A stretch of 64,000 nucleotides of DNA from Phaeosaccion multiseriatum. Taxonomy: Eukaryota > Protista > Ochrophyta, other classes. Below, piece after piece: positions 1-50,927 of this stretch (position 1 is its first letter; each line of letters starts with the position of its first letter). The position numbers and the translations under genes were made by a program. The notes under the pieces are model-generated. The model was not told the origin of the DNA and did not search any database. It was given only the letters and a program-made list of their open reading frames with translations. Where the stretch lies: the NCBI GenBank assembly GCA_965112735.1, contig OZ218962.1, positions 1,054,001 to 1,118,000 of the forward strand, in the 5' to 3' direction.

Positions 1-3000
1 GAAGGCAAGAGGCAGCATTGTGAACGCTTTCGCCCTTCGTGACGATACGAGCGTTGGTAAGCATCAGTCCCTCGACCCAGCAGCTGGCAGCTCCGTAGAG
101 GTGGCAGTGAGGGCCGTTGGGCTGAACTTCCGGGACGTGCTGAATGTGCTGGATATGTACCCTGGAGATCCTGGAGATCCTTGCTCCGAGTTTGCCGGGG
201 AGGTGGTCAGTGTGGGAGCAAGCTCGCGCTTCCGTGTCGGTGATGCAGTGTTTGGCTTTGCGGACGGAGGATGCTTGCGCAGTCATATGACGACGAGTGA
301 TGTGTGTCTGGCCGTGATGCCGGCTGTGCTGAGCTTCGAGCAGGCCGCTGCACTTCCCACCGTGTTCCTCACCGTGAGGAAGGCCCTTGAGGGCCTCAAG
401 GCTGGAGAGAAGGTACTGATTCACGCCGCGTCTGACGGTGTGGGCCTTGCCGCCGTCCAGTATGCTCAGCGGATCGGCGCAGAGGTGTACGCCACTGCTG
501 GTGCTGCTGTGAAGCATGACTTCCTCCGGAGCTTGGGAGTTGAGCACATTGCGTCTTCAAGAGACGCAGAGGCGTTCAAGCAGTCCATGGGGGAGATGAA
601 GGTGGATGTGGTGCTCAACTCTCTGAGTGAAGACTACATTCCCTTCTCGCTGGCCATGCTAAGCCAGGGTGGTACATTCGTCGAGATTGGCAAGCGAGGC
701 GTGTGGAATCACGACGAGATGCGCACCGCCCGGCCCGATGTGAGGTACGAGCTGCTGGCACTGGACAGCATGATTGAGTCTGACTTGTCGGCGGGTGAGC
801 CGGGCTGGATAAGCGACGAGCTGCAGCATCTGGCTGAGGACTGCATGTCTGGCAATGTGAAGCCCTTACCAACCATACCCTTTGACATGAGGGAGGATAC
901 TCAGAAGGCCATGGTACTCATGCACCAAGCGAAGCACATCGGCAAGGTGGTGCTGACCAACCCCTTGTATGGTGTACCAGTGGTGTCCGATGGCACGTAC
1001 GTCATCAGCGGCGGTCTGGGGGCTCTCGGCCTCGTGACTGCTCAGCACCTCGCGTCGAGGGGCGCTCGTCACCTTGTGCTGCTGTCGAGGAGTGGGAAGG
1101 TCGCCGAGAGCATGACAGAACAGTGGCAGCAGCTTCAGAACAAGGTGGAGCTGATCCATACTCCTACTTGTGATGTTGCTGATGCTGAGGCACTTCGGAC
1201 TTGCCTGGGGGGCGTGCTGCCCCTGCTGCCCCCTGTGCGCGGCGTGGTGCATGCTGCCGGGGTGTTGGATGATAAGCTGATGGGAGAGCAGACGGCGGAG
1301 AGCGTGACGAACGTCTTCCGACCGAAGGTGCAGGGAGCGGTCAACTTGCACGAGCTTTCTTTGAGTTGGTCGAGGGAGGAGGATCACGCCTCAAGCCTGG
1401 ATTTCTGTGTGCTTCACATCCATGGCTGGAGTACTGGGCAACGCTGGACAGGCCAACTACGCTGCGGCGAACGCGGCTGTGGATGGTTTGATGCGGCACA
1501 GGCGACACCTCGGCCTCGCAGGGATGTCATTGCAGTGGGGACCGTGGGCTGACGTTGGTATGGCCGCCCAGCTCGACAGTGCGGTCCAAAAGCAGTTTGA
1601 GCTTGCGGGAGTGGGCACGGTGTCAGCTGAGCTGGGTATGGCTGCCTTAGATGCCGCTGTGATGTCGTCAGCGTCTTCAGCGTCTTTGGGTGATGTGTCC
1701 ATCCTGCCTGGGATGGACTGGGCCATGTATGGGAAGGCCACGAGAGGTGGGCGTGTTCACATGCTCGAAGGGCTTTTGGGCGATGTAAAGGGGGATCTGA
1801 AAGCAGGAGAAGGAAATTCGGAGCTACATGAGGAGTTGTTGGACCTGCCACCGGTGGCGCGCCAGGCGATGGTCGTGAACAAGGTGAAGCAGGTTGTGGC
1901 GCACTGCATTGGAGACGAAGGTGGTCTGATTCATGATTCCACGCTCCTCATGGAGGCCGGTGTGGACTCGTTGGCTTCGGTGGAGATTGTCAACCGACTC
2001 TCCGCGTGGGTCGGCTTTAGTCTACCGCCTTCGATTTTGATCGAATACCCGACACCGGCAGATATCGCGCGGCATATACTGGGGCTTCTACTTCCGTTAA
2101 AAGTCAATGGAGGTGTGGGCGTGGTGGTCAAAGCAGACACCAGCGACGCCGCTGCTGTGCGGGAGGACGAGAGGAGAGAGGGCTACCGTGCTCTGGACGC
2201 CAGGGATGCTGACGAGAGAGAAGATGGTGACCGTGCTCTGGACGGCAAGGATGCTGACTACGTTGGCTCGTCCTCTTCCGACATTGTCAGCTTCTGCATG
2301 GGCATCGTGGCGATGGTTTACAGCTCGCTGCTGGTCGCCGCGTCTGCGCTGCCCGGTGTCATCGTCCTTGACTCGATTGTGCTAGACAAGTGGGGCAGGT
2401 GGATTGCGTTGGCCTGTGTACCTCTCGCTTTCCTTTCGTGGGCTATTCTGCTGATGGCAGTGGTGACGCTGACAAAGTGGGTGGTCATCGGCAGGTACCG
2501 GGTGGGGTCTTATCCCATCAATAGCGGGTACTACTTCCGCTGGCTCTTTGTGGATCGCGTGACGGACTTTGCGTTGCAGCGACTGCCGCTGCATGGGAGT
2601 GTGGTGTGGACATGGTGGCTTCGCGCACTCGGAGCAAAGATTGGGCATGGGTGTCGCCTGCATTCGGTGTCGGTATCGGAGTTCGACTTGGTGCACTTGG
2701 GGCGGCAGTCCACTGTGGAGGAGTTTTGTCGGGTTCGGCCTGCGATGATAGAGGACCGCCATCTCCTTCTCCGAAAAATCACGGTTGGCGCAGATTGCGT
2801 GTTGGGGGCATCGTCTCAGGTGTTTGGAGGCACAACCATGGGAGAACTGGTGCGCTTGCGACCGTCAACGGTGGTCAGCGGGCGGTGTGGGCTCCTTGCC
2901 CCTTGCACAGAGTGGGGCGGCTCTCCGGCCAAGCAGTGCGACGACAATGCTGATAGAATGGGGAGCGGCTCCCTGCGGCCCAGTGTGAATGATCCTGCAG

Positions 3001-6000
3001 CTACGACCGTGAAAGACGTCTTGAGAACCGCGATTGGCTTCGCGCTGGCGGCAGTTTGCATGGTGGTCGCGAGTATACCCGCGTACTTTGTCTGGGGAGA
3101 GATGAGTAAAGCGTGGGGACTTTTCACATACGTGCCTCAGCTTGGACGCTACGTGCCGGACTATCGCTCCCTCGACGTGGGCTACCTCGTGGCTGCATGT
3201 GTCGCCACCTTCGATCTGGCGCTGGTGCCGCTGCTTCCCATCGCCCTTGGTTTGGTGGACACTCTTGCGCCGCTGAAGGAGCTGACGACGGAGCAGTATC
3301 TGGCGAAGCCGATGCTGATTCTGGCCTTGTCCTATTCAGTTGCGGGCATCTGCATGACCGTCATGAGTGTCGCTCTGAAGCGATGCTTGGGAGCTCTTAC
3401 TGCCGTCAGCAGCCGCAACAGCAGCGGCAGCAGTGGCCGCAACGTCACCGGGCAAGAGCTCCATGCTGTCGACGTGATGATGCGACTGGTGTACCCCCGG
3501 TACATGGTTCTGCACTCAGGAGGGCCTGGCATGGTCCTCTGGCTTCGTTCTCTGGGCGCTCGCGTCGCCTGGACTGCCAAAGTGGGCGCTCCTTCCCCTG
3601 TGCTGGACCCTTCTTTGCTAGATCTGGGGTCTCACTCTGTGGCGTCGGGGAGCTTCGCCACTCGGGCGCAAGGATACGCAGGGACAGTCAAAATTGGAGC
3701 TTGCGCGGTGACAGCAGCAGGCGCCTGTCTGTGTGCGGGGTCGGAGCTTTGCGATACTTCTTTGGTCGGCCCATTGACGTGTGCTTCGTCATCGACGTCC
3801 TTGGATCCGAAGGTGCGACAGAGAACTCTTCGCAGTGGCGACCTAGTGGCACGAGTCAAGTTCCACAAGCGGCATGATGAGGAGCCTCGGGCGGGTGGGG
3901 GACTCGCGTGGTGGGCTGGTGCTGGAACCATGTTGTACTCGATCGTGGGCCCTGTTGCCATTCTTCTGCTTCAATTCACGAGTGTGTACGCGAGCACCCT
4001 GTTGGCCCAGTGGCTTGTGACTGCGGTGGGTAGGTGGCTGGCTCTGGTCACGTCGCCTGTAATTCTCTTGTCACTCAGCATGGCCCTGATGGTGTGGGCT
4101 GTGTTGCTCAAGTGGGGCGTCGTTGGCCGAGCTCGCGCAGGTTGCTACGCTGCCGTCGGGGGCGTGACGTTCCACAGAGACTTGTTCAGCACTACCTTCA
4201 CGCAGGTAGCCAGACAGAGTGGTGTCAACGGCCTCGCTGGCACTGCAGCGCACTCCTTGTGGTTACGAGCCATGGGAGCTGAAGTGGGCAAAGATGCGGT
4301 GGTGCTTGCAACGGATGGCCTGTCCAGCTTCGATTTGGTGCACTTGGGGGCAGGAAGCGTTGTGGATAGGGACTGCGTGGTCGATGCCCGACGAGTCGTG
4401 CATGTGGAAGGAGGGAGGGGGCCTCCAGCTCACAGCGAGGAAAGCACCACCTGTTGTATTTTATTTGAGAAGGTTCAGGTTGGCCGAAGGGTGACGGTAG
4501 GGGCAGGATCCATTGTTGCTGCCTCGGCGTCTCTTCCCCGTGATTGCGGCGTGTCTCCGGGAACTTTTATTGGTCCTGGGCTGCAGCCGACAGACGATGT
4601 GCTGCTGGAAGGGGTGCCCGCGGTGCGTATGTCGCGCAGAGCCAGCAGTCGCAACGGTGCTGGCGGAGAGTTCGAGGCAGATGTTGTGGGTAAGAGAGAA
4701 GCTCCGGATCTGTGGGCGGACGCGTATCTGCCGAGCGAAATCGCCGCCACGATACGGGAAATGGCGGGGCAGGCATCCGCAGGAGGTGTCAGGTTGAGCA
4801 CACCAGTAGCAGAGGCCATCCTGCTCACAGGCGTGACAGGATTCGTAGGGCGTTATTTGCTGGTGGACTTGCTGCAGGCTCACCCTCAGTCGACTGTGCA
4901 CTGCATTGTCCGCGCTTCGGACGATAAGGACGCCATGCAGCGCACTCTGTTCGGCTTGAAAGAAGCCAACCTCACTCTGCGCGAGTCGGAAAGAGCAAGG
5001 CTGATGGTCTACCAGGGAAATGTCACTTCTCCATCTCTCGGGCTTTGTAAAGAGGTGTATCAGCGCCTGGCCAGCACAGTAACTGTCGTTTACCACTCGG
5101 CCGCTCTCATCAGCTACTCCAAGAGCTATGCACAGCTGTTCGCGCCCAACGTGCTGGGGACTCTTCATGTGCTCAGCTTCGCTGCTACCAACTCTTTGAA
5201 GACGCTGCACATGGTTTCCTCAATAGTTGTTCTCACTCCGGACATGGCCAATGAGGACGGGAGGATGGCAGCCGACGCGCCCTTGGGAGACATGACTGCA
5301 GCTCCTGCCTCGGGGTGCGCGCTTGGCAAGCAGCTTGGGTACTCCCAAAGCAAGGTACGATCAAAGGCAGTACTGCCATACTCTTGCTCGTCCGTCTACC
5401 CTCATATCATGTTATGCTCACCTTCTCGCTGTTTGTCTCGTTTCCCCCCAAAACCCCGCAGTGGGTAGCAGAGAAGCTCGTCACGCAGGCAGCGCAGGAG
5501 GGCCTGGCCGTCAATGTGTACAGAGTCCCACTCGTCGCAGGGCACACCTCCACAGGATTTGCCCCCACGCGCGGTGACGTGTTCACGTCCATGATTGGGC
5601 AGGCGAGCAAGCACGGGGAGGTTGTGGCGCACGCCATGAACGCCACTCCGGTTGACTTGGTGTCGCAGGTCATAGTCCGGCTCAGTGCACGGCCGGGAGT
5701 GGCAAGTGCGGGAGTTGGCAGACGCAGCAGCGATACATCAACAGCACCGACGGTGTACAACGCTGCGTGTGAGGCCTTTACCATTGCACCAGAGACGCTC
5801 CAACTGGCAGTCGAGAGTGCCGGTGGCACACGGCCTCGAATCCTCTCTACAGAAGACTTTCTCGCCTCGAGGAAAATGCTTCCCGCGTTGAGCTACTTCC
5901 TGCGGCCCTTCTTTGACGACATGCCACCGCTACACGACGTCTACACGCCGAGCCCGCTGGCTGAGAGGTGCTTCAAGCAGATTCTGAATGCGCAAGAAGC

Positions 6001-6079
6001 CAGGCACAGCAACTCTAGCTGGAACGGATTGACTCTCGTCTTGACCATGATGAGAGCTCAGCAGGCCCTTCATCAATGA
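1..6079 (+). CDS. Type I polyketide synthase, 3' part: ER-KR-ACP + Pls-like (NRPS terminal, TM/beta-helix x3) domain + thioester reductase; 5'-truncated, frameshift at ~1406-1411, one intron 5355-5461
   Basis: ER: GLNFRDVL, LIHAASDGVGLAA, HIGKVVL. KR: ISGGLGALG, HAAGVLDD (B-type), GQANYAAAN. ACP: GVDSL. Three hydrophobic repeats with WLR(A/S)(L/M)GA; the first and third end in GxPA. R domain: LLTGVTGFVG and GYSQSK|WVAEK, joined by a GT-AG intron. Confidence 0.9.
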
Positions 6080-22744: not shown

Positions 22745-23199
22745 TCATTGGCTTTGGGTTGCTGGGTGCTCTATTACCCTCCCCCCCCCCGGTTTCTCCT
22801 CCTCCTTCTCTTCCCTCTTGTGCGGCTCCGGCTGCGGCTCTGGCTCCGGCTCCGGCTCCGGCTGCGGCTGCTTGTCTCCTCTGGCTCTGACCGATACCAC
22901 CGGCCTGCGCTTCACAATCACCGATCCTGCCTGAGACCTCAGGCCTGCACCGAACTTGTTACCAAAGCTCAGTGTGCTGCTTTGCTTGGTCTGTTTGGTC
23001 TTGGCTTTGGCCGCGGCGGAAACCTGTCGTCGATAGCACAGCACAGCAGTTGGGGATACAGTGATACAGCGGTTGGATTGGTGATACAGGCACAGCAGTT
23101 GGAGATACAGCTGTACATGGCTGGTGAGAAACAAGCAAGCCCGTGCAGGACCACTCTATCACACACTATCCTGTGTGTCGTTGTGCGTATCTCTCTCTC

Positions 23200-23244
<45 letters not shown>

Positions 23245-25545
23245 GTATGTCTGTGTGTGTCTCTCTCGTTGTGTGTGTTTGTGTTTGTCTGTGTGTGTCT
23301 CTCTTTGTGTGTGTTTGTGTGTGTGTCTGTGGTATTCGATCGATCTCACCCTGAATGTCCGGTATCCACTGAACGCAGTTGGTGCCCCCCCCCTTCCTGC
23401 TGTTGCTCCTGTTGCTCCTGTTGCTGCCCCTCCTCCTCCTCCTCCTCGTGCTACTGCTGTATCACCAGCTGCTGCTGCTACCGCCTCTCCCACAAGCTTC
23501 GTGCGCAGCCCTGATGATGTGTTCGCATCTGCAGGAGAGTCGCCGCCACCCTCCCTGCCACCGATGTTGCTGCTGCTGATGCTGTTGCTGCTGCTCCTCT
23601 CCTCCGATGCTTCGAAGCCCCCTCTTGTCTCGGCCGTAACCTCTCTCGAAGCAGCAGAAGCAGCAGCAGCAGCAGCAGCAGCGGGAGGGTCTTCTCCGCC
23701 CCCCTGGGTGACAATCACCCCCCCCTGGGCCAGCATCATCACCTTGCCACCGCCCCCCTGGGACAATCCCCCCTGGGAGAGCCCCCCCTGGGAGAGGAGT
23801 ATGTTGGCCGCTGCCGCAGTGAGCGGAGACACCACCACCGCAGCCCCCCCTGGAGACCCCACCGGGGGCCGTGGGGTGCGTTCCGCCTTCTTGTCGGTCC
23901 TGTAGCGAGGACTCGGGGCGGGCATGGACAGGCCGGAGGAGAGCAGCAGGAGGGGTCCTCCCTCCTTCCTCTCCCTCGTGTCCTTCCTCTCCCTCCTGTC
24001 CTTCCTCTTCCCCTCCTCTAGCGGGACGATGACGGCTTCTTCTTCGGGCCTCCTCTGTTTGCTCCTCTTGCTCTGCTTGTTGCTGTTGTTGTTGTTGTTG
24101 TTGTGCTTGCCGACTACAGAAGCACGTGAGGCGCTTTGGGCGGCTTCTGCAAGCTTTGAAGCCACCCATTTGTCCTCTTCGTCGCCGCTGTCCGCGTCAG
24201 AGCTGCTGTCGCTGCCGATGCTGCTGTCTTCGCTCAGGGCCGGATCCGCCCTCTCGATACGTCCGCCCTTATTGCTACTACCGGTGCTGCTGCTTCTCCC
24301 GTCTCTACTGACGGCACAACCACTCGTTGCATCAAGAGCCTCCTGCTTGCCGGCATCCGCCCCTCTCTCTTGCAGCTGCTGTATCACCAACTGCTGCTGT
24401 ATCACCAACTGCTGCTGCTGTTGCCCTAAGGCAATGTTGAGCTTGGCCTCCGCCCTTTCGTGCACGGCGCTTCTCTGCCACCCCTCCCCGCCTCCCCTCG
24501 CTCCTCCTCCGCCACCCCCACCACCAGCAGCAGCAGTTGGTGATACAGCAGCAGCGAGAGCAGCGGCCTCTGCTCTCCGCTTCCCCTTGGCGACAAGTCT
24601 CGCCATGTCCAGGCCGAATAGTCCCGAGTCTTCCCCTTCCTCTTCCTGCTCCTTCTCCTCCTCTTCCTCCTCCTCGTCCTCCTCCTGCTGCTGCTCTGGC
24701 GTCTCCATTTGAACGTACTTCGCTGCCCTGCTCACCTCCCCCTCCTTCTTCTCCTTATCCTCCTCCTCTACCTTCTGTAGCTGCTCCTCATCTTCCCCTC
24801 GCTCTCTCCTCTGATGAGGAGAACATGAAGTATCATCACCATCAACATTACCCCATCCACTGCCATCATCGTCGCCCCCCAACCCGTGTTGCCAGCCCTC
24901 CTCCTCTGATGCAGGACCAGCCCGGTCCTTCATCCCACCGCTCTCGCTCTTGTCGTCGCTCTTGCCCTCCCTCTCTCCCACGTCCATGCCCTTACTCTCG
25001 CCTGCCCCCTCGCCCTCACCCTTCCCCTTGCTATCGCTCTTCCTCCTCCTCCCCCCCATGGCGGTGTGAGTACCCTTGCCGGTCGGTGTGCCTGCAGTCG
25101 GCGGCAGTAGGGGCTTGTGAAACATGTCAGAGAAGGACAGGGCTCGTTGGAGCCCTCCGCTCTTCCTTGTCTTTGCCAACGGGCCTCTTCTTCGCCGCTC
25201 CGCTCGACCGGGTACCGTATCACCAACTGCCGCTGATGCTGTTGCTGTTGCTGACACTGTATTACCAACTGCTGCAGTAGCAGCTGCTGCTGTCTTTCCC
25301 CTACCATCCGCAGCAGCAGCACCGTTTGCCTTCGCTGTTGCCCCCTTTCTCCGGTCTGCCTCACGCACGGGATCGGCCGCTGCGACTACTGCACCTCCTT
25401 GCGTGTCCCCCCCCCCCCCCCCGCCCTTCTTGTCAGTAACTGCTCTGCCTTTGGCTCCTTGAGCTCCTTCGGCCTCATTTCTCGCTGCGCTTGAAGCCTT
25501 CTCGACATCCCTCCTCGCCTTCGAAAGACAAGCCTCTGTGTCTCG

Positions 25546-25584
<39 letters not shown>

Positions 25585-28500
25585 CTCCTTCTTCTCCTTC
25601 TGCTGTATCATCCCTCCCTGACGCTGCTGTCCGTTGGCTACCGCTCTCCGCCCTTTGGAACGCCCCTCTGGACATCCCTCCTGACCTGCCTGTCCGTCTG
25701 TCTGCTCCGCCTCTCCTGCCTGCTCTGTGGTGGCCGTCTCCCCTCTCCCCTCCTGTATCACCAACTCCCCCTCCCCCAACCGACCTTGTAGAGCCATCCC
25801 GTAAGGAGGTGCCCCATATGCTTCTTCCTGTGGCTTTGTGTTCCGTGGTCTCCCATCGTGTAGAGAAGGTGGCTCTGGCGGAGGGTCCTCACCTCTTGGT
25901 GACACTAGATGGCCCTCACTTCCTCCTCCCCCTCCTCCTCCTCCTCCTCCTCCTCCTCCTCCTCCTCCTCCTCCTCCTCCTCCTCCTCCTCCTCCTCCTC
26001 CTCCTCCTCCTCCTCCTCCTCCTCCTCCTCCTCCTCCTCCTCCTCCTCCTCCTCCTCCTCCTCCTCCCCTCCTCCTCCTCCTCCTCCTCCTCCTCCTCCT
26101 CCTCCTCCTCCTCCTCCTCCTCCTCCTCCTCCTCCTCCTCCTCCCGCTCTTCTCATTCGTCGCTGCTGCATGCGCACCTCCTTGGACTTCGCGTACCCAA
26201 TAACCCACTCCCCATCCACTGCCATCCCCTCCCCCTCACCCTCCCCCTTCCCCTCATCCTCCCCCGCGTTGCCACCACCCCCTGCCGACGTAGACGCAGC
26301 ATGTGGAGGGACAGCGGCAGTGGCGTCAACAGGAGCGGTAGAAGCACCATCAACATTAGTGGGGGTGCAAATAATAGCCGTAGAGCCATTCCTCCACATC
26401 GCCTCTCCACCCTCTCCTCCTCCTCCTCCTCCTCCTCCTCCTCCTCCTCCTCCTCCTCCTCCTCCTCCTCTTCCTCCTCCTCCTTCTCCTTCTCCTCCTC
26501 CCCGTCGCCGCAGAGGAAGTGTCTTGTGAATCTCGGCCTTGATTGTGGACAAACGGGCCCTCCAATCATTGGCAAGCTCCTCGACGCTCTCCAGGGGGGC
26601 CATCTTCTTCACAGAGCCGTGTCGCAAGGAGGGAGGCTTGGCCACGGGAAGAGCAGACTCCTGGCCATCTTCATCATCTCCATGGTCTGCTGCTGCTCCT
26701 ACTGCTGAGTCTGAAGCCCCTCCTCCCCCTCCTCCCCCTCCTCCCCCTCTTCCTCCTCCTCCTCCTCCTCCTCCTCCTCCTCCTCCTCCTCCTCCTCCTC
26801 CTCCTCCTCCTCCTCCTCCTCCTCCACCACCACCTCCTCCTCCTCCTCCTCCTCCTCCCTCTTCTCGGTCTCGAGCAAGCCTTCCGCGGGCGCTCCTGGG
26901 CCTCGCACTCGAAGGTCGGACCTTACTCTTACCAACCCCGCGTATTGGGGTCGTGGACTGCCATCTGGTGATCCAGTAAGCAGCTGCTGTGGCTGCCGAG
27001 GCGAGCTCTACACGAGGGGCGCCTTCGAGGGCAGAGAGGGGCGGCAAGGCGGTGCATACACCAGGGGCCCAGGAGGAGAAGCTGGAGTGTATGGGGGAGG
27101 GGGGGAGAGGGGAGGAGAGGGGAGGAGAGGGGAGGGGAGGGGAGGGGGCGAGTGGAAGGGGAGAAGGTACAAGGGCGGCGACAGAGAGAGGGGAGCGGGT
27201 CGGGTTTCAGTTTCGGCAGTTTCAGTAACGCTACTTGCTTTCCCTCCCCCCCCCTTCGTGTTATGTGCTTTACTTTACCTGTCCTCTCCGGCGCAGGGGT
27301 TTCCCGCCAAAAACAATTCACAGAGCTCGTTGAGATTGCCCAGCACCGTAAGTACCGCGGGCAAATGTGCCAGCCTGTTGCTCCGAATGTCCACCACGTC
27401 CAGGACCGGGCAGGCAGAGGGCAGGGCATCAATGTCTTCGAGACGATTGAAAGGCACATAGAGTTCTGAGAGGAGCGACAGGGGAGGAAGGGATGCCAGA
27501 GAGGACAAGCAGTTGCGAGGCAGACGCAGACTGGAGAGGCGGGCCAGGCCCTGTTGGTAGGACGGGGGGGGGAGGGGGGGGGTGGAGAAGGGAGGACTGA
27601 GGGAAGGATACGCTATGAGAGGGTGTGAGAAGGACAGGGGGGGGTGGAGGGGCATGTTTTCTTCAAAACGCCTGAAATTAATGCATCATCGGCCGATCCC
27701 GGTGGCCTTCAACTCTTCGTTGTTTTGCCAACTTAACTCTCTCTCTCCCTCCCTCCTCACTCACTCCATTCCCCCCTCCCCCCTTCCCCCTCCCTCCCTC
27801 TCACCCTCCCTCCCTCCCTTTACCCATCCACAATGTCCCTTCCACCTTCCCTCCCTCCCTCTCTCCCTCCCTCCCTCTCTCCCTCCCTCCCTCCCTCTCT
27901 TCCTCCCTCCCTCCCGCCCCACCCTCCCTTCCCTTCCCTTCCTCCCTCCCTCCCTCCTAACCTTAAGTCCTTTGAGGTCATCGATGCGGTTATCCCCGAG
28001 GTGGAGCTCCGTAAGCTTGGCGAGGTGAGTGAGTCCCCTCAGTCCCCTCGGCCCTCCGATGTCGTTACTGGCGAGGCTGAGGCTCTGTAGTTGTACCAAT
28101 CCAGGGGCTACGTCCGTGCTTGTGAGGCCGTTATCGGACACGTCAAGGAGGGTTAGAGAGGGGCAGCCCTGGAGGAGGAGGAGGAGGAGGAGGAGGAGGA
28201 GGAGGAGGAGGAGGAGGAGGAGGAGGAGGAGGAGGAGGAGGAGGAGGAGGAGGAGGAGGAGGAGGAGGAGGAGGGCCAAAGGTTAGGACAATGGTGGAGA
28301 GCGTCTTCCAGCGAGTAAAATATTTTCTTTTCTGTTGGCAAAGCAGGCGCTGAAGTGGAGTGAGGCTCTGATTGTTGATTGTTGTGTGTTGGTGGTGATG
28401 CTTCCAGCACGATGCCAAGCCGTAACCCCCTCCCTAGACTGCCTCGAGCAGGGGTCCTGTTCCATCTCCCTTCTGGAGGACCTTTCCTGTCCGCCCTCTT

Positions 28501-38898: not shown

Positions 38899-39316
38899 GA
38901 TTCACCCCCCCCAAATCTCCTTTCCCGTCTGCTGCTCTCTACTGCTGCTGCTACTGCTGCTGCTGCTCCTGCTGCTGCTGTTGCTGCTGCTGATGCTACT
39001 CCTGCTTTTTCTCCTTCTGCTACACTGCTCTGTCCTCCTTCTCTGGGGTGTGGACGCCCACCGCAGTGAATTAGTGTCCGGTTTGAGCTTGAGATTCTTG
39101 GTTTCTGCCTCCTCATGGACGTCTACTTCCCTCTGTAACTTTTCCTTGGAGTCTTCTGCATCTCTGTATCTTGCGTCAAGCAGAGCTCTGCTGTGGAGGT
39201 TCCTGTCGGGCTTGTTTATTCGGATGGAGAGCCGAAGAAGCCGTGCCTCGTCATGGAGAGCCGGATACGTCGATGAGGGACCATGACGAGAGCCTCGCTT
39301 GGGAGCATGCCATCTG

Positions 39317-42300
39317 ATGGAAGAGGCAGCAGCAACTGCGTCGGGCTCCTTCCGGCGCGAATGGGAGGTCGACGCCACGCTGCCGCTGCGCCGGCACTGG
39401 GGCTCGACTACGACGAGAAACAGGCCCGTGGTTGTGACTCTTGCTCAACAAAGCGATGTGGGCAGCGGCAGGTCCACGGTATCTGGGGCAGGGCCGCTGT
39501 TCGCCGTGCATTGCGTCAGTAATGCCGTGCATGTTTGTCGGGGAGCGGCATCAGCAGCGGTCCCAGCAGGGGTAGACAGGGCAACAGGAGCAGGAGGAGC
39601 AGCAGCAGCCACAGTGGTGTCCGTAGTGAGCTTTTCATCCGATGTCCTCTGGCTGGCTGAGGCTTCTCCTGACAATGTTTGTCGTGGGGAGGGGGAGGCG
39701 GCTGCAGCTCTCAGCAGCAGCAGGAGCAGCAAGTGCCTCTTTTTGGTAGCGTGTCGCGACGGGAGCGTCTTCCGGGTGCCTTGCTCTGTGCTTGGGACTG
39801 ATACCGGAGAAGGAGGGGTCGCAGCACCAGCTGGAGTGAAGCCGTGCGCGAGAGTGCATGCAGTCTCCTCTTGGAGGGTTTGCATTCACCCTGGAGCGAG
39901 AGTGGGCGTCCCGTTGTGTGTGGGGGATGGGCAGGGATGGACGAAGTGGGTGGTGGTGGCTGGGATACTCGACCAGGCAGCACTGTACTGTGCCGTGGCG
40001 AGCAGCAGTGGCGCAGGAGACGCAAATGTGATGGACATTGCCGGGGGCGGCTCTGAGGAACATTTGGTTGTACAGCAGGAGCAGGAGCAGGAGCACGAGC
40101 AGGAACAGTTCGTGCTACAGCACTTTTTGGCGGAGTTGGATGGGCTCGAGCCGACCTTCATCGCTGTCGTACACAGGGGTGGAGGCAGGGGCAACGACGG
40201 GAAGACAGCAAGGGGGAGGAAAGGGGTGCGTTTAAAGGGCGATGGCAAGGGTGAGGGTGAGAGCGAGGAAACCAAACAGAGTGGCGAAAGCGGTGGGGGG
40301 ATATATGCAGGTCAAGACTGCGTGGGGGGACGGAGGAGCGGCGGTGGCGGCATTTGGCTCTCTCGAAGTGTGTTCGACTCTTTGTTCGGGGCGCGGCAGG
40401 GGCAGGGGCAGGGGAGCTGCTGCGCCAGAAGCGTGGTGGTGATTGGCGACGAAGGAGGTGGAGTCCGTTGGTGTGAGATGACAGTGACCCCACGCAACAA
40501 CAACGACGACGACGCGCAACGGGGGACGACGTCTCCTCCTTGTTGCACTCCTGTGTGCGGGACTCTGAAGGGTATGGGCGAAAGAGTGGTGGCCATTCTG
40601 CCTGCCTATCCGGCGTTCGCGCATGACTTGTCGACAGAGCATGAGAAGGACGACGAAGACGGGGTCGGTGGGGGTGGTAGTAGCAACGGGCGCCGGAACG
40701 CAAAGGGGGGTGGAGAGGAGGAGAGGAGGGGCGAAGTGGGGGCCTTGCATCACCAACACGATACTTCGCTTGCCATTGGCCTGGTGCTCGTGGGACGGGA
40801 AGGACTCGTTCGCATCCATTGCCATCGCGATGTAGTAGGGGGCGCAGGAGCAGGGGAGACGCGTAAGAGGAGCAGAGAAGACACCATAGGGAGGAGTTAT
40901 GACAATAGTAGTTGTGACAGTAGTGACAGCAGTGATAGCAGCGACGGCAGTGGACGCAGCGATGGCTCGTATGATGACGAGGAGGAGGGCGACGAGGGGT
41001 TCGAGGGCGACGACAGTAGGGACGACAACGACGAGCAAGCAGAATCTCGACCTCGAGATGGAGTGTCGAGGAGAGCGCAGCAGCTCGAGTTTAGGCTCGC
41101 GCACACCCCCCTGGAGAGCGTCTTCAGCCTGGCAGGGGGTCTGCTGGTCTTTCTCAGCGGTGGGCGGGTGCGTGTCATCTCGCTTTGGGGACCACCAACA
41201 GGATGGTTCCGGGCGGGGAGGCATGGCCGTGAGAGTGAGGGGAGTCGAGGAGGAGGAGGAGGAGCTCGAGAGGCGTTGCTGCTGCCCCTCAGCAGCAACA
41301 TTGCGGCCATTGGCTGCTTCTCGGCACCGGCCCTGGCTACCCTGCCTTCGGCTTCATCTGCTGAAGAAGAAGTGACGACGACAACAAACAGCAGGAGAAC
41401 TGACGCGGGCATGAATGGGGAGATGGCAACTGCCAGGGCTGCCCCAAATGGCGTTGCTAGAACTGCTGCTGCCGCTGTATCAACGGGCGCTGATGGTCAA
41501 CACAGCGGGGTCCACAGCAAGAACCTGTTGATCTGCCTCACAGGAAAGGGTAGAGTCACTTGCTTCGCCCTTCCTCAGGACCTATCACTGATGGAGGAGT
41601 GGGCGCTTGATGTAGGCAAGGGAGGCGTCCGGGGCGGGGGGCAGGCAGGCGTGGAGAGAAAGGTCAAGGGCCTGCTGCAGAGGCTGTCCGAGGTTGGGTC
41701 GAGGAGAGATGCCCTCCAAGGGGAGGCGGTCCGTCTTGACATGCAGCTGCTGGCCCTGGGTAAGATGCTGGAGGGACTGGAGGTGGTGCAGCGGGGCATA
41801 GGCCATGGGGAGGAGCATGCAGCAGCAGGGGTTGGTACTACATCAGGGGGGGGGGGGGGAGGAGCAGGTGGGCAAAGCCGAGCCCTACAGGATGAGGAGG
41901 CAGTGCGACTCGAGATTCGCATGCGCGCCGCTGCTGTCGCCAAGGAGGAGGACCGGTACAGGTACGGGTGTATGGGCAGGCAGGCATATGGGTAGAGGTG
42001 TATGGGCAGGCAGGCATATGGGTAGAGGTGTATGGGCAGAGATATAGAGGCTTATGGGCAGGTGTATGGGCAGGTAGATAGAGACTTATTGGCAGGTATA
42101 CGGGTAGAAGTGTATGGGCAGGCATATGGGTAGAGGTGTATGGGCAGATAGATAGAGGCTTATGGGCAGGTAGATACAGGCTTATGGGAAGGTAGATACA
42201 GGCTTATGGGCAGGTATACGGGTGGAAGTGTATGGGCAGGCGTATGGGTAGAGGTGTATGGGCAGATAGATAGAGGCTTATGGGCAGGTAGATACAGGCT

Positions 42301-44369
42301 TATGGGCAGGTATACGGGTAGAAGTGTATGGGCAGGCATATGGGTAGAGGTGTATGGGCAGATAGATAGAGGCTTATGGGCAGGTAGATACAGGCTTATG
42401 GGCAGGTATACGGGTGGAAGTGTATGGGCAGGCGTATGGGTAGAGGTGTATGGGCAGGCATAGGATACGCCCCTGGTCCAGTAAGAAGCCTGTCACCTCC
42501 ATCCTGCTACGCACGCACCCATGCATCCACTGCCATTCACCCTGTCGTTACCCGCTCAGGTCCGACGGCGGCGCTGCTCCCTCTTTTTGGGCCGGCGGAA
42601 TTGGTGCCGCCGCTGCCGCTGCCGTGAGCTCTCCCTTCGAACTGAGCACGAGACTCAACGTGAGGCTGCTCCTGCCCGAGAGGGTATGCAGGACACTCAG
42701 TGAGGCGATGGCAGCAAATGGTTCTGGGGTGGGGAGCGGAGCAGGTGGAGGGCAGGGGCGAGGAGGAGGAGCAGGGGGAGGAGGAGGAGGAGGAGGAGGA
42801 GGAGGAGGAGGAGGAGGAGGGGGAGGGGGAGGGGGTGGCGGTGGTGGTGGTGGTGGTGGTGGTGGTGCCTGGGGGAGAGGGGCGCGAGAACAGAGCGGCG
42901 TCAAGTGGGTCCTGGTGGTAACCGTCACCCACACAGACGCAGTTGTTGATACAGCAGCAGGGAGGTGGGGGGGGGATGATAGTAATGACGACGATGATGG
43001 CGATGATGATGATGAGGAGGAGGATGACGATGACGATGATGATGTGGAGGACGAGGACGACGCAGGGCCGGAGCCCTCCCCTGCCCCGCCTGAAGGAGGG
43101 CAGAGCTGGTCCTTCTCGTTCCCCCTCGACCCAGGATATGTCCAGCGACATAACGGTCGGGTGGAGAGCAGCTGGCCGGTGGGGCTGACGTCATCTGCTC
43201 CGGTGGCGGTGACCTGTCTGTTGGAGCTTCATCTCTGGGGGGCGACGCTGTTGTCAGCTGCAGGCGTCGGCGATACACGACGACGAGGAGGAGGGAGCCG
43301 CAACCGTGGCCCTCGCCGCTCTCGCCGTGCTGTGTCGGTCACCCTGGGCAGCAAGAGATTCGATGTGATGGACTGGGGTACCCCGCTCGCCTACTTGCCG
43401 ACGAGCACAGGGGCCTTCAAGGCAGCGGCGGCAGCGGCGGCAGCGACAGGGGCGGCCGCTGCAGAGGTGTCAGGAGGAGGCGCAGGAACCATGGGTGTAG
43501 CCATGGGCTTGGGCATGGGCAGGCGTGGTGGGTTTTGGGGCGGGCCACAGCATATGGTGGGGCTTGCTGGCGTGGCGAGGTATACAGCAGTTGATGGTAT
43601 GCTCCCGTCGTCGTCGTCGTCGTCGTCGTCGCCAGACATGCCAGACTACCCGTCGAGCCGTGTATCCGAGGGGCAGCAACAGCAGCAACCCGTCTCAATT
43701 CATGTCGGGCTTCAGGGTGGTGGTATGTTGACGGACTCCCTCGCAGAGCTTCTGCGGCTCTCAGGAAGGGCTCCTCTTTCAGATGCAGCAGTTGGTGATA
43801 CAGCAGCAGCAGCAGCAGCAGTTGGTGGTACAGCAGCATCGCCGCCTGGAGCTGTTGGAGGGATCCTGTGGGATGGATCCTTCAACGAGGGGGGCACTGC
43901 TGTCGGGGGACACATTGCAACCTTTAGGCTTCTGCGGAGGCCTACAAAGGTCTCTGACAGAGGTCTCGGGCGAGAGCGAGGGGGTGGGTGTGGGGGGGGG
44001 AGTGGGCATGTGGAGGAGTGGAGGGTGAAGTTGACATGTTCGCATGAGTGCTTGATCCCTCGCTTTCGTGAGGCCCTCGCCTACCGCCACGACCTGTTCC
44101 TCCAGCAGCAACAGCAGCAGCAGCAGCAGCAGCAGCGGTTGGTGGTACGGCTCGACCCAGAGTTGCTTTCGTCATCGGCAGCGGCGCTCGTCGAGCTGGA
44201 CGGGGACTTGCGCGCTCTGCGGGGAGGCGCTGCAGCCATAGCCACACACACAGACACGCCCCAAGTACAGCCGTTGGTAGTACAGCCACCACCCCCCCGT
44301 CTGGCGGCCATCGCGCAGGGGAGGGACGTTATGGAACGCCTGAAGGACGTTTACATGCGACTAAGGTGA
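39317..44369 (+). CDS. FAAP100-like (Fanconi anaemia core complex-associated protein 100); intron 41962-42559
   Basis: Collinear blocks resembling FAAP100 as I recall it: VFDSLFG...VVVIGDEGG, LVLVGREG, LICLTGKGRVTCFAL, KVKGLLQRLSEV coiled coil, PVAVTCLL, VTLGSKRFDVM, terminal VYMRLR. Confidence 0.65.
41962..42466 (+). repeat. Intronic G-rich minisatellite (GGTAGAGGTGTATGGGCAG-type units)
   Basis: Visible tandem degenerate repeat filling most of the intron. Confidence 0.85.
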
Positions 44370-44824: not shown

Positions 44825-46807
44825 TCAGTAGTAGTTGTTGTTGTTGGACGGAGGTGGCTGCTGGTTGCTTGCCAGAGGAGGGTACCCCCCTCGGGAGCCC
44901 TGCTGAGAAGAAGATGGAGGAGGCCCGTAGCCCCCTTGATTACTGCTTCCCCGAGGGTTGGCGCTGTTTGGTTGAGTGGGGGAGAAAGACGGTGGGGCAT
45001 GGGCGCCAGAAGGGGGCATCTGCTGCTGCGGCGGCGGCGGCTGCTGCTGTTGGTATTGCGGCTGCTGGTTCTGGTGTTGTTGGGAGGAGGGAGGAATCGA
45101 CGAAGGAGCCGCACCGCCGCCACTGCTGTAGCTCGACTGGCTGCTGAAGGAGGGGTACGGCGCTTGTTGATGTTGCTGAGGCTGCTGTTGCTGGGCGTAC
45201 GGAGGCTGACTGTACTGCTGCTGCTGCTGCGGCTGCTGTACCACCATCTGCGGTGGCTGTCCACCATACGTTGTTGTCTGGGCAGAGGGCTGAGACGGCG
45301 GTTGGTAACCAGACCCACCAGACCCCGATGATGATGAAGGCACAGCAGACTGCGGCTGTACCACCAACTGCTGCGGCTGTTGTCCCGGATAGGCGCCCCC
45401 CACAGAAGGAGGAGGCTGAAAGCCCCCCGAAGACCCCGAAGGCCCCGAAGGCCCCGAAGGCGGAGGCTGATACCCAGAAGATACCAAAGAGGAAGAGGAC
45501 TGAGACGAGGAAGAGGGAGGAGGGGCTGAACCCGAGTACCTGCTTGGCGCTCCCGCCCCCTGGCCCCCCTGGCTTGGGGGCTGGTAGCCCGACATCGGTG
45601 CACTCCCACCCCCACCACCCGTCGTGCTGGAAGGAGGCTGTTGATATCCTGACCCTGACCCTGACCCTGACCCGGACGGAGGCTGATACAAGCCGGCCTG
45701 CTGCGGTGGCTGGGGCTGGCTTGGTGGTTGGCCGGGAGGCTGATATATGGTCGTGGTGGGGGGTGCGTTGCCCTGCATGGGAGGTGGCGCGTAGCCAGAC
45801 GCAGATCCGGACCTGGACCCAGATCCTCCGGGTGCACTATGATAGGCCATGGGTGGTGCCGCCCCTCCCCCCGCCTTGCTCGGCGAAGGCGGTGGTTGGT
45901 ATCCCGAAGAAGACCTCGACCCAGATGGCTGCTGCTGCTGCTGCTGCTGTTGTTGGTGTTGTTGTGGTTGAGGTGGGGTGTAAACAGACCGACTACCCCC
46001 TGCACTGCCCTCGCGACTAGGCGCGGATGAAGCAGAAGAAGACGTCCCAGAGTGTCCAGAGGGCCCTCCACCCCCTCCCTGTGGTGGATACGAATAGCTT
46101 GATCCACCCCCACCCCCTCCCGTATTAGTCGAAGCTGGCGGAGGCAAGTAGGAAGGCGGCACAGCCTGTTGCTGTTGCTGAGAGCGTCGATAGGGGGAAG
46201 AAGACCCAGTGGGGGGGGCGTGGGCTTGTTGTGCTTGCTGTGTGGACTGGGAGGGGGGTGCGTATTGGGCCTGTGAAGTTGGGGCTGCTGCTGGAGCACC
46301 AACTGCTGCAGGAGGCTGGTATAGTGGGACTCCTTGCGGCGCCGTTTGGGGAGGCTGTGTGTAACCTGCTTGTTGGACCGGTGGGTAATAGGAGCTGAAG
46401 GGGGCAAAACAAAAGCGAAGGGGGTAGAGAGAGGTGAAGAGGAAAGGTGAGGAAGGAAGGAAGGAAGGAAGGAAGGAAGGAAGGAAGGAAGGAAGGAAGG
46501 AGGGAATCAGAGTTGAGTGGCTTTGCTCATTCAAAACAGAGACACAAACATCGGTTCCACTCCCCGACCGTGTCTTCTTCTCAATGAAATCTCAGGGCAG
46601 GCAGCGCCAAAGCCATTGAAACAGACACACGGGTGCGGTCCACATCCCTCCCTCCCTCCCTCCCTTCCTCCCTCCCTCCCACCTCACCCCCCCCCCCCCT
46701 GCCATCAATAGACGCACCTGTTGCCATACTGCCCAGTGGAAGCTCCTGCCATTGGTGCCGTCGCTGCTACCGCGGCAGGCGGCGGCTGGTAGACAGAAGA
46801 AGAGTAC

Positions 46808-46839
<32 letters not shown>

Positions 46840-49800
46840 AACAACCAACTGCTCGGGCTGCTGTTGAGGCGGTGGCTGTGAAGCCCCACGCGACACTGGC
46901 CCTCCGCTCAGGGAAGGAGGCTGATACACGGGCCTACTGCCGCTGTTGTTGCCGTTGCTGCCACTGTCTCGATAAGACGAAGAAGACACACCGGAGGACT
47001 GACCGACGCCGGGCCCTCCTACGCCCGCCGGCGGCGTGTACCCAGCCTGACGGGGAGGATACGACTGTGCCGGCGGCTGACGATAGGGGTGCTGCTGGGG
47101 CAGCTCGTAGCGACCTCCTGCTCCTCCTCCTCCTCCTCCTCCTCCTCCTCCTCCTCCATAGGCCCCTGAACCTGAGCCCGGGCCTTGTTGCCCCCCCCCA
47201 CGACCGTATTCATCCCCCCCTCCCCCTCTCGAATCTCCTCTCGTGTCCCGGCTCCGGCTTCTGTCCGCCATGTAGTGACCACCGCTACCACTCCCGCTGC
47301 CGCCGTTCCCATCCCGGAAATCCCTCCTCCCTCGGTCAAAGTGGTCACCACCACCATCACCGCCGCCATACCTGTCCCCCCCCCGCCCAGCCCTTCCATC
47401 GCCCCCTCCCCTGCCACCACCGTGCTGAAAGTCATCTCTGGAGCCGTGTTGATGTCGACCACCACCGCGACCACCCGGACCAAAACCGTGACCACCGTGG
47501 GCGCGTGGATGCCCCTCCTCCCCCTCCTGAAGGGCTTCACACACCAGCTTGACAGCCACGTAGAGCGTGTCGTCGTTGTTGGTGCGTATCACCACCTCCC
47601 TCAGTTTGGCCCCGGGGGGCATGTCGGACTTGTTCTGTACCACAATGCTTGCTCCACTGTCCTGCACAAGCTTACGAATGGTGGCCCCACCTCTACCAAT
47701 CACCGCTCCGGCACACACATCCTCCACAAACAAAACCGCACCCGTGCTGGTGACCTTGATTTGCTCAAGTCCGGGCCCAGTCAGGGTCTGAATGTCCCCT
47801 CCCCCTCCCCCTCTCCCCCCCCCACGCCTATGACCACCACCGCCGCCTCCATAGCGGCCGTGGTCATCATCTCTACCTCCTCCTCCCCCACCATACCGAT
47901 CCCCTCCTCGATCGTCGCGACTGAAGGGCCTTCTCCCTCTCTCAGGGCTCTCGTGTCGACTCCCGCCGCCATAATACCCCCCGCCACCGCGATAGTCATC
48001 CCCCCGCCTGCTTCTGACGTCCCCCTGCTCCCTGCTGTCCCTGTCCCTCCCCCTGCCTCCTCCGCCCCCCCTTCCCCTTCCCCCATCATGATCCCCACCC
48101 CCTTCAGGATCGCGGTCGGGCATAACCAGATCAACCTTAAACTTTGGCAGCGGAACCTCCTTCTCGTCCTTCTTCTTGTCGCTGTCGTGCCCTCCCCCGT
48201 GCCAATCGGGAATGAGGTCGACCAGCAAATGGCGGGCCGCTCTAGCCTTCTTCACATCCTTCTCGGGAATGGTGCCCTTGCCATTGGCCAAGCGAAGCAT
48301 GAGTCGCCACAGCCCTTCACAGATGTCGGTGAAGGTACCCGATAGCACCACCACGCGAGCATCAAGCCAGAGGGAGGGAGAGCCCGAGGAGATAAGAGCT
48401 TCCACGCCAACCCGCATTGCCTCCATCTGCGCATTTGTTTGCGAGAGTGTGTGCGTGTGTGTGATCGGTAGTAGAGTGTGCGTGGGTATGTGTGTGTGTG
48501 TGTGTGTGGAGAGGGGCGGGGGTGCTTTAGGGAGTAGGACACGTACATGGAAATCAGCTTTCGACTAAGGACGCAGCAAGCAAGGCAAGCAAGGCTGATA
48601 CCATAGAGTAGAGGCTCACAACAAGCTGCACGAGCACACCTTTACAAGCTAAGCTCATGTCCATTTAACAAGCGAAGCGTACGCACCTCTTTGGTGAAGG
48701 CCTCATCTACAACGGCGTCCAGCAGATACTCGGGTAGAGGAATCTTCAGGCACCTGAGCAGCAGGATAAGGGGAGGGGACAGTGACAAAGGGCAAAAGGA
48801 AAGAGGCCGGGGGGTGCGGCCGACTACGGTAAGGAGCAGGCACAGAATTGAGAGCGAGCACTCACTCGATTGCATATATACAGCGACAGACACACAATTA
48901 TAAAAAATCACAATCACAGTCACAGTAGACAAACGCAAATCTGACGACGTAACGGTCGTAACTGATACTGTTGGCCGGCACAACACGTCACCATCAGAGA
49001 GATAAGAGACGCAAGCAAAGGACAACCAAGGGGCTCTTGGATCATCTTCCAGCCCCACGAATGCACAAATGCATCCACTCCTCCTACTCCTCTTCAGCCC
49101 CCTCCTCCTCCTCCTCCTTCTCCCCCTCCTCCCCCCCCCCCCCTCCTCCTCCTCCTCCCAACTTACATTCGTGCCTGACTCTGGTCAAACGACTTGTGCT
49201 TAATACTCTTGCTCCCTGCCGCTGCAAACGCCCCCCCGGCTGCCTCTGCCTCCGCCTCCGCCTCCTCCTCCTCGTCGTAGCCCCTCCCCTCCCCAGGATG
49301 GTCGCTTGCCCACGCTTGCTCTACCCCCTTAAGCGCCAACCGCAGGGCGAGATTGGCCGCCGGCGATCCCGTGATGGTCAGCACGCCGTGATGGCTGCCC
49401 AGCGATGGCTCCACGGTGCCTGCATGGATGGATGGATGGATGCATGGACGGATGCATGGATGGATGGATGTACAAGTACACAGGAGAGAAGAGAAGGGGG
49501 GTGGGGACAGCCCATTGCCGTACAGAAGAGAACAAAAATAGGGGGGTGAGGCCAAGAGGCCCATTGTTGAGTCACACTTGCTGTCCTTCGCTGGGCTGTG
49601 CTTTGCTTTGCTGTATCACCAACGGCTGTGCTAGGTGAACTCAACTCACCGAGGTAGGGCCTGATCCCAGCCCCGGTCTTGGTCTCCAGCGCCTTCAGGC
49701 CCTTCCCGTCCTCTCCGTCAAGAGCCTTCAACGCTCTGGCAGCAGGCACAGGGGAGAGAGAGAGAGAGATAGGGAGAGAGTGAGAGAAAGGGAGAGAGAG

Positions 49801-50893
49801 GGAGAGGAGAGAGAGGAGAGATTGAGAGAGAGAAGGCCCACCCACCCACACACCTCCCAACCCACCTGTACTGGACGAACATGGTGGCTACCTCCGGCTC
49901 CTCGTCCCTCATGAGCCTGCCGCCCACCCGAACATCGCTGCTCATCATCGCCATTGCAGCGGCTCTGGACTGCTCTGAGCCAATGAGATAAACGATGCGT
50001 TCGTGCACACGCACGCCCCTCCCCCGCACGTTGCTCTCCTCCATGCTGACGTGTAAGCGGCACCCTGTCGCCTTCTCTACATCCTATACATTGTGGTGGT
50101 GGTGTGGGTGTGGCCGTGGTGGTGATATAGTGATATGATGGTGTTGTAGTGGTGGTGGTGGTGTGGATTTGTTTGGTTTGGTACGGTTTACACGTCGCGT
50201 TGCGGCGAAAGAAAGAAAGGGAGGGAGGGAGGGAGGGAGGGGGGGGGGAGGGAGGGCGAGAGAAAGGGCATGGAAATCCGGTTCAGGGCGAGCCTGGGCA
50301 TAACCAACGGCTCGACACGCCACATCAACGCGAGGACGCCTTCCTCATAACCCACGCCCTCGCTCACACGCAAGCACTCACATGGATTCCGCTGCCGCCC
50401 TTCCCAATTAGCGTCCCGCAGGAGGAATCCGGCACGGCCCAGCGAACCGTTTGCATGTTCGGAACATCTGCCACCCCCTCGGGGACTGCGGACCTTGTCT
50501 CCTCTGGTTTGGTCGCTGCTGCTGCTGCTGCTTGGTCATCAACCGCTACTGCTGCGGCTGCTGCGGCTGCTGTGCCTGCTGTGGCTGCTGCTGTATCACC
50601 AACCGATGAAGGTGCCACGGCACCCTCCTCCTCGTCGTGTTCGTCCATGGCACTGTTTGCTGCATGGCCCCCTGACTCTGAGATGCCGGCCTCCGTCTTC
50701 ACAGCTGCTGTATCACCAACCACTGCTGCTGCTGGTGCTGCAACTGAACTTCCTGCCTCCGCAGAATCGGTCGCACCAGCCGTGTCCACCCCTGTATCCT
50801 CCTTCTTGATGTCTACTGCTGCTGCATCACCAACTGGTCCTGTCCCTTCTTCCACCTTGACCTCTGTTGCTGTCCCTCCTTCCTCTTTCACCT

Positions 50894-50927
<34 letters not shown>

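Follow-up and report, generated by a model that had tools for sequence, protein, structure and literature searches.

A Polyketide Synthase Gene of Phaeosaccion multiseriatum Encodes a Polylysine-Synthetase-Type Membrane Region Followed by a Thioester Reductase

Results

The window analyzed here comprises 64,000 nucleotides of Phaeosaccion multiseriatum DNA (contig OZ218962.1; C13:1054001–1118000), and coordinates are counted from its start, with negative values lying upstream. Its first 6,079 nucleotides (+ strand), spanned by three long open frames, are the terminal (3′) part of a modular polyketide synthase (PKS) gene of ~34 kb, in which profile searches recognized six ketosynthase (KS) domains. 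The final PKS module of this gene, KS-AT-DH-ER-KR-ACP, is followed by a region resembling the membrane-embedded terminal domain of ε-poly-L-lysine synthetase (Pls) and then by a thioester reductase (R). Upstream, long open frames continue to a limit at about −28,400, with the domain order KS0-ACP; KS-AT-DH-ER-KR-ACP; KS-DH-ER-KR-ACP; KS-AT-KR; and KS-DH-ER-KR-ACP. Repeated KS, AT, DH, ER, KR, and ACP sets within a single gene identify a modular type I PKS, with five reducing modules after KS0-ACP, two of them without an AT domain recognized by Pfam. Of the five extension modules, four carry the full reducing set and the fifth has a KR only, so the chain on the last ACP would be expected to be largely saturated, with a single mid-chain hydroxyl, subject to the starter, the extenders, and possible iteration. 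The locus is a single nuclear gene of great length with few introns, belonging to a photosynthetic ochrophyte stramenopile.

The original prediction, made from the letters of the window, had read positions 1–6079 as ER-KR-ACP, a membrane region of three repeats, and a reductase, and the profile searches placed the corresponding domains there. The ER of the last module lies at 92–956 (Pfam ADH_N, ADH_zinc_N, and ADH_zinc_N_2 on window 2–1420), the KR at 992–1553 over two reading frames (Pfam KR positions 1–124 in frame 2 and 133–180 in frame 3), and the ACP, with its GVDSLAS phosphopantetheine site, at 1881–2078 (Pfam PP-binding, E 6e-11). Two features had been overlooked in that reading, a frame break at 1406/1407 inside the KR and a 107-nt intron at 5355–5461. 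From 1407 to 5354, the ACP through the first exon of the reductase occupy a single open frame. No AMP-binding domain was found by Pfam before the Pls-type region, either in the window or in the upstream modules; the ER-KR-ACP of a PKS stands there instead.

The region between ACP and reductase, 781 amino acids long, matched the Pls/PosA profile TIGR02353 (NRPS_term_dom) with an E value of 4.5e-49 over profile positions 27–679 of 695 (nt ~2376–4574). Hydropathy, motifs, AlphaFold2, and Foldseek together divide it into three consecutive units, every one comprising two membrane helices and a soluble hexapeptide domain (left-handed beta-helix, LbH). Repeat 1 (2283–3000, + strand, as for all features of the gene) contains TM1 and TM2 (~2292–2486), a WLRALGA motif at 2616, and LbH domain C1, and is the best conserved of the three. 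Repeat 2 (2994–3900) is composed of TM3 (~2994–3113), a helical insert, TM4 (~3303–3419), WLRSLGA at 3540, and a degenerate LbH domain, C2. In repeat 3 (3900–4631), TM5 and TM6 (~3900–4124) precede WLRAMGA at 4260 and LbH domain C3. The WLR(A/S)(L/M)GA motifs, the hydrophobic helices, and the beta-helix-like segments that had been noticed in each repeat were all recovered: a hydropathy scan delineated hydrophobic clusters at 2283–2465, 3033–3371, and 3915–4094, and an AlphaFold2 model of the 781-residue region, computed from a 75-row alignment (predicted local distance difference test score 86.9; predicted template modeling score 0.90), contained six long helices and three beta-helical segments. 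The best Foldseek matches of these segments were hexapeptide enzymes, namely maltose, galactoside, and serine acetyltransferases. As modeled, the six helices and the three acyltransferase-like beta-helices would form one compact body. A sequence search of the PDB with the same 781 residues returned no Pls-type structure, just weak matches to hexapeptide transferases. The agreement of domains, motifs, helices, and structure indicates that the observation is real and far beyond chance.

Repeat 1 retains the junction and LbH motifs of the bacterial enzymes (KW..GR..G.YP, R.W, GA..G, FDL..G, IED, and W.GSPA). Among the Pls-type domains that are linked to a reductase, nearly all conserved polar residues (K63, R84, D133, and E155, domain numbering) likewise fall in this repeat, and conservation concentrates near the junction of TM2 and C1. 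In the third beta-helix, the three closest paralogs (L008, L009, and L010) carry a 49-residue insertion at ~4420, a tandem duplication of adjacent sequence that the window copy lacks.

The thioester reductase that had been expected after the membrane region is encoded by two exons. The first (4818–5354) bears the NAD(P)-binding motif TGVTGFVG and the catalytic YSQSK (TIGR01746 E 7.6e-39; NAD_binding_4 E 4.5e-37), and the second (5462–6079) matches TIGR01746 positions 171–251 (E 6.2e-11; domain match at 5462–6076) and ends in a TGA stop at 6077–6079. Removal of the intervening GT..AG intron joins ...YSQSK to WVAEK... in frame, and a contig of the public run X1 carries exactly this spliced joint; all paralogs examined keep an intron-sized gap at the same position. 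Scored exon by exon, the TIGR01746 match reaches 134 + 42 bits, each part lying under the 213-bit cut-off. The profile match, the glycine motif, and the Tyr-x-x-x-Lys signature together assign the domain to the thioester reductase family, and among solved structures it is closest to MxaA R, M. tuberculosis NRP R, and CAR (E 3e-23 to 1e-18). The R domain looks competent, to judge by these motifs. It occupies ~480 residues C-terminal of the Pls-type region, which is not the last domain of the protein, as it would be in Pls and PosA.

Six close copies of the ACP-Pls-R triple exist in the genome: besides the one in the window, C15 carries two, and C2, C10, and C12 have a single copy each. The five further copies all keep ACP, Pls-type region, and R contiguous, with the intron at the same place, and one of those on C15 has an open frame of 2876 residues. 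A chimeric assembly, which the original prediction had named as a danger to its reading, is ruled out by these paralogs together with homologues in other protists that keep the same order. Over the Pls-type region, dN/dS ranged from 0.33 to 0.48 among four copies compared, indicating purifying selection; the value of the window copy shows no relaxation relative to its paralogs. In a second class, of about 20 other PKS genes, KS-ACP is followed by a terminal Pls-type domain that is more distant, and R is absent. Members of this class lie on C1, C2, C4, C8, C12, and C16 (e.g., L013:2490–6279 and L015:2219–6280), with TIGR02353 E values of 1e-17 to 1e-21 on the first exon. Their later repeats have also diverged from the bacterial C2 and C3 motifs, so the comparison does not discriminate whether catalysis was lost in the R class alone.

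Outside the genome, none of 1.84 billion representative proteins exceeded 33% identity to the 781-residue region. The best database relatives are bacterial A-T-Pls (adenylation-thiolation-Pls) proteins (~E 1e-58), whose similarity to the query is largely that of its repeat 1, which aligns to each of their own three repeats. Colinear alignment over all three repeats was obtained for a small number of proteins, and in each of these NAD_binding_4 follows: dinoflagellate C-A-T-Pls-R proteins (Prorocentrum cordatum CAK0807952.1 and Symbiodinium pilosum CAE7780214.1), a EukProt transcript, an environmental KS-AT-FMO-DH-ACP-Pls-R protein (P0194/P0270), and two fragments. The jakobid Stygiella has a PKS with a Pls-type end and no R. 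All 10 R-linked Pls-type domains, which belong to this alga, to the dinoflagellate C-A-T-Pls-R proteins, and to the environmental protein, fell on one side of a branch with an approximate likelihood-ratio test (aLRT) value of 99 in a maximum-likelihood tree, apart from all 64 bacterial rows; the branches are long, and the placement is to be read with care. The simplest reading is that Pls-type domain and R have long been inherited together and were joined to either PKS or nonribosomal peptide synthetase (NRPS) modules.

Is the window copy itself still functional? At the frame break (1400–1412), blastn against the two C15 paralogs (L002 and L003) revealed that two nucleotides (TT) are absent: the window reads GATTTCT followed directly by GTGTGC, the broken form being GATTTCTGTGTGC and the unbroken form, as in the C15 paralogs, GATTTCTTTGTGTGC. 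The frameshift suggests that the locus may have been disabled recently, within a family that has intact members, for instance on C15. If the deletion is real, translation would stop at nt 1552 and nothing downstream would be made, leaving a relic of a functioning family; we consider it an even question whether the window copy is such a recent pseudogene. In favor of this view, the deletion is visible against two paralogs, and contigs of the public runs X2–X4, aligned to the window, report no insertion at 1406/1407; there is no indel row among the public contigs. Against it, dN/dS of the window copy versus its paralogs is 0.33–0.37, not above the values among the paralogs, and contigs that appear to derive from RNA match the downstream part exactly. 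An assembly error could also account for the break, because the runs X1–X4 are available as contigs and none is shown crossing the site; one clipped contig displays the paralog-like form there, and X1 has no depth at this position.

Besides the contig with the spliced joint, other X1 contigs match the window copy without mismatch in stretches of up to 580 nt, while the paralogs differ by 5–9%. These identities and the splice joint indicate transcription, the spliced form being most simply explained as RNA. Contigs of three runs match the window up to 1576 and then diverge, and similarity to the C2 paralog begins at 1573. These positions resemble a boundary left by recombination or duplication immediately 5′ of the ACP-Pls-R cassette, and on C2 some 3 kb separate that copy of the cassette from the closest ER-KR match. 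At the other end, contigs of X2 and X4 match to 6076, just before the stop codon, and continue into 255 nt of unrelated AT-rich sequence, which may derive from a second haplotype or from an almost identical copy whose 3′ flank differs.

All six KS domains are interrupted at the same Pfam position (~222; C13:1026500–1051300) by ~100–170 nt, in frame in two cases. The shared position looks like that of a single conserved intron copied along with its module during duplication. Intron density differs widely within the genome: the HSP90 gene (C2:1610489–1613230) has many small exons, and the PKS genes have exons of ~5 kb. Between 6 and 60 kb of the window, the open reading frames (ORFs) yielded no partner enzyme, just two KH-domain ORFs (46705–48423 and 50364–52130, both − strand) and weak SnoaL/SOUL matches, so a gene cluster is not proposed. 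Three long ORFs of 640–1080 residues have no Pfam match (22969–26205, − strand; 39299–41992 and 42450–44366, + strand) and sit in strong GC skew (−0.34 and +0.3). Elsewhere in the assembly, rbcL was found twice with identical scores on two small contigs (C18:88102–89019 and C21:22185–23102), 89–91% identical to the genes of Vaucheria, Chrysoparadoxa, brown algae, and raphidophytes; the two may be plastid inverted-repeat copies or belong to two plastid contigs. These identities place the host among the ochrophytes and speak against a haptophyte; no match at the species level was obtained.

Discussion

Our analysis confirmed a PKS-ACP-Pls-R architecture; related fusions had been partly noted before, and none has been characterized. 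In the bacterial enzymes Pls and PosA, which have been characterized, the terminal domain couples a carrier-bound acyl group with a free nucleophile (PMC10522769, PMC8506220). The algal region resembles that of Pls (Streptomyces albulus) and PosA (Acinetobacter baumannii) in its three tandem units of two membrane helices and a hexapeptide beta-helix, placed directly after a carrier domain. The published PosA model has three beta-helices packed like a sugar-nucleotide acyltransferase trimer (PMC10522769), and the compact body of six helices and three beta-helices predicted for the algal region is similar to it. Unlike the bacterial domains, the algal one is fed by the ACP of a PKS in place of an adenylation-thiolation pair, and a reductase follows where Pls and PosA end. 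It also differs from the family in its low identity (20–33%), in a profile score below the cut-off, in the loss of C2 and C3 motifs, and in that no polymer product is known from the alga.

The original prediction had known of no characterized enzyme with this architecture. The literature searched indeed held no description of a PKS-Pls-R fusion and no characterized member, yet relatives had already been noted in two algal groups, and the Pls-R pair occurs in dinoflagellate NRPS proteins. In Coccomyxa subellipsoidea, proteins resembling type I fatty acid synthase (FAS-I) carry an NRPS terminal domain in place of a thioesterase (Blanc et al. 2012, PMC3446292). By description, these are likewise uncharacterized eukaryotic algal type I FAS/PKS proteins with a Pls-type terminal domain; they differ in coming from a green alga, in having a single FAS-like module, and in that the paper mentions no terminal reductase. 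Multidomain PKS transcripts of Karenia brevis have a C-terminal LbH region (Van Dolah et al. 2017, PMC5725682) and are comparable, again by description, as protist modular PKSs with hexapeptide motifs at or near the C-terminus, but that paper names LbH motifs alone and recognizes no Pls type, membrane helices, or reductase. The dinoflagellate C-A-T-Pls-R and environmental P0194/P0270 proteins share the same pair of domains, the three colinear repeats, and the same group in the tree; they are 22–29% identical to the algal region, most are fed by NRPS modules, and none has been studied. A 2026 preprint mentions an NRPS_term_dom gene family in Symbiodiniaceae, and in the PKZILLA papers the enzymes are said to end in a thioesterase, with no Pls-type domain reported. 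With regard to the reductase, MxaA R, M. tuberculosis NRP R, and CAR contain a homologous domain with the NAD(P)-binding and Tyr/Lys motifs, but in these R directly follows the carrier, whereas 780 membrane-embedded residues separate ACP from R in the alga.

We tentatively propose, with a confidence slightly short of even, that the Pls-type region and R constitute a conserved two-part chain-release unit at the membrane, in which reduction by R would be coupled with acyl transfer of the LbH type. On the ACP, the chain would be presented as an acyl thioester that is largely saturated and probably bears one mid-chain hydroxyl. Some of these chains would be reduced by R to an aldehyde or alcohol, and the beta-helix domain, chiefly by means of repeat 1, would move ACP-bound acyl groups onto a hydroxyl or amine acceptor. 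This acceptor could be the newly made alcohol or a molecule of the membrane or cell surface, and the product would be an ester- or amide-linked lipid put into or across the membrane. The co-inheritance of the Pls-type domain with R argues that both are needed, and the position of the R-linked domains on one side of a well-supported branch argues that they work together.

Several points weigh against this proposal. The TIGR02353 score of 167.4 bits does not reach the curated cut-off of 423.1 bits. Repeats 2 and 3 lack motifs found in at least 80% of 64 bacterial members (QTHLFEDRVMK in C3; F.AD and G.R.F.GN in C2), which are missing here and across the whole R-linked group, and the alignment of that group contains no conserved histidine. 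Taken together, these features suggest that transferase activity may have been lost. The assignment to the Pls family made in the original prediction thus holds for nearly the full length of the profile and fails at the level of score and of the C2 and C3 motifs; the domain appears to be a diverged relative, for which a Pls-like ligase activity is not assured. Coupling of the two domains is also speculative, since one domain that releases every chain would leave the other without substrate. Finally, the frameshifted copy may make no ACP-Pls-R protein at all, no single contig of X1–X4 bridges the ACP-Pls-R stretch, the RNA nature of run X1 is a guess, and no PKS- or R-linked member has been characterized biochemically.

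The main rival, which we regard as unlikely though a serious contender, is that the chain is released by R alone, in the form of an aldehyde or alcohol, and that the Pls-type region serves as a non-catalytic anchor or as a conduit into the bilayer. The missing motifs of repeats 2 and 3 and the absent histidine would be explained in this way, as would the apparently full competence of R and the clustering of conservation near the TM2/C1 junction. What speaks against reductase-only release is that repeat 1 shares its conserved polar residues (K63, R84, D133, and E155) with the bacterial enzymes and that the whole 780-residue domain is under purifying selection. In addition, the PKSs of the same genome that end in a Pls-type domain without R need that domain itself for release.

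It is less probable still, and in our view improbable, that the unit is a Pls-like polymerase, in which a hydroxy-acyl thioester would be the donor and, once free, the acceptor, yielding an oligo- or polyester primed by a diol or aldehyde made by R. With KR as its sole reducing domain, one upstream module is expected to yield a hydroxyl in a chain that is reduced elsewhere, and the Pls-R pairing is conserved. A precedent exists in Pls, which takes its free product as acceptor (PMC8506220). Against polymerization stand the closest relatives, which are not proven polymerases, the lost family motifs of C2 and C3, and the lack of a known polymer from the organism; the prediction of chain length is itself uncertain because some modules lack an AT and the starter is not known. 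A more elaborate version would make Pls-R the polyketide counterpart of polylysine synthesis, common to stramenopiles and dinoflagellates: R would make a hydroxy-alcohol primer, the pseudo-trimeric beta-helix would repeatedly add hydroxy-acyl units, and a polyester or estolide resembling cutin or algaenan would be extruded through the six-helix bundle. We offer this as a long shot. A polyester, polyamide, or wax ester product, as first suggested for this locus, is pure inference. That ACP, Pls-type region, and R are not one protein at all, as chimera or as separate genes, can practically be dismissed: no single public contig spans the whole stretch, but ACP to R exon 1 form one open frame, and the same order recurs in the five other genomic copies and in independent proteins of other protists.

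What would a release unit of this kind mean? To our knowledge, product release by giant algal PKSs is largely obscure, and most of these enzymes lack a recognizable thioesterase. Dozens of PKS genes in the P. multiseriatum genome terminate in a Pls-type membrane domain, one subfamily adds a reductase to this end, and the same pair occurs in dinoflagellate NRPS proteins. The ACP-Pls-R tridomain is small enough for expression and assay, and its interest for natural-product enzymology is tempered by the frameshift in the window copy. If the pair is a working unit, it would represent a widespread off-loading chemistry at membranes that has not been characterized previously, with ester- or amide-linked lipids, fatty aldehydes or alcohols, or a polymer as possible outputs, and it would widen the role of the Pls/PosA domain beyond cationic homopolymers.

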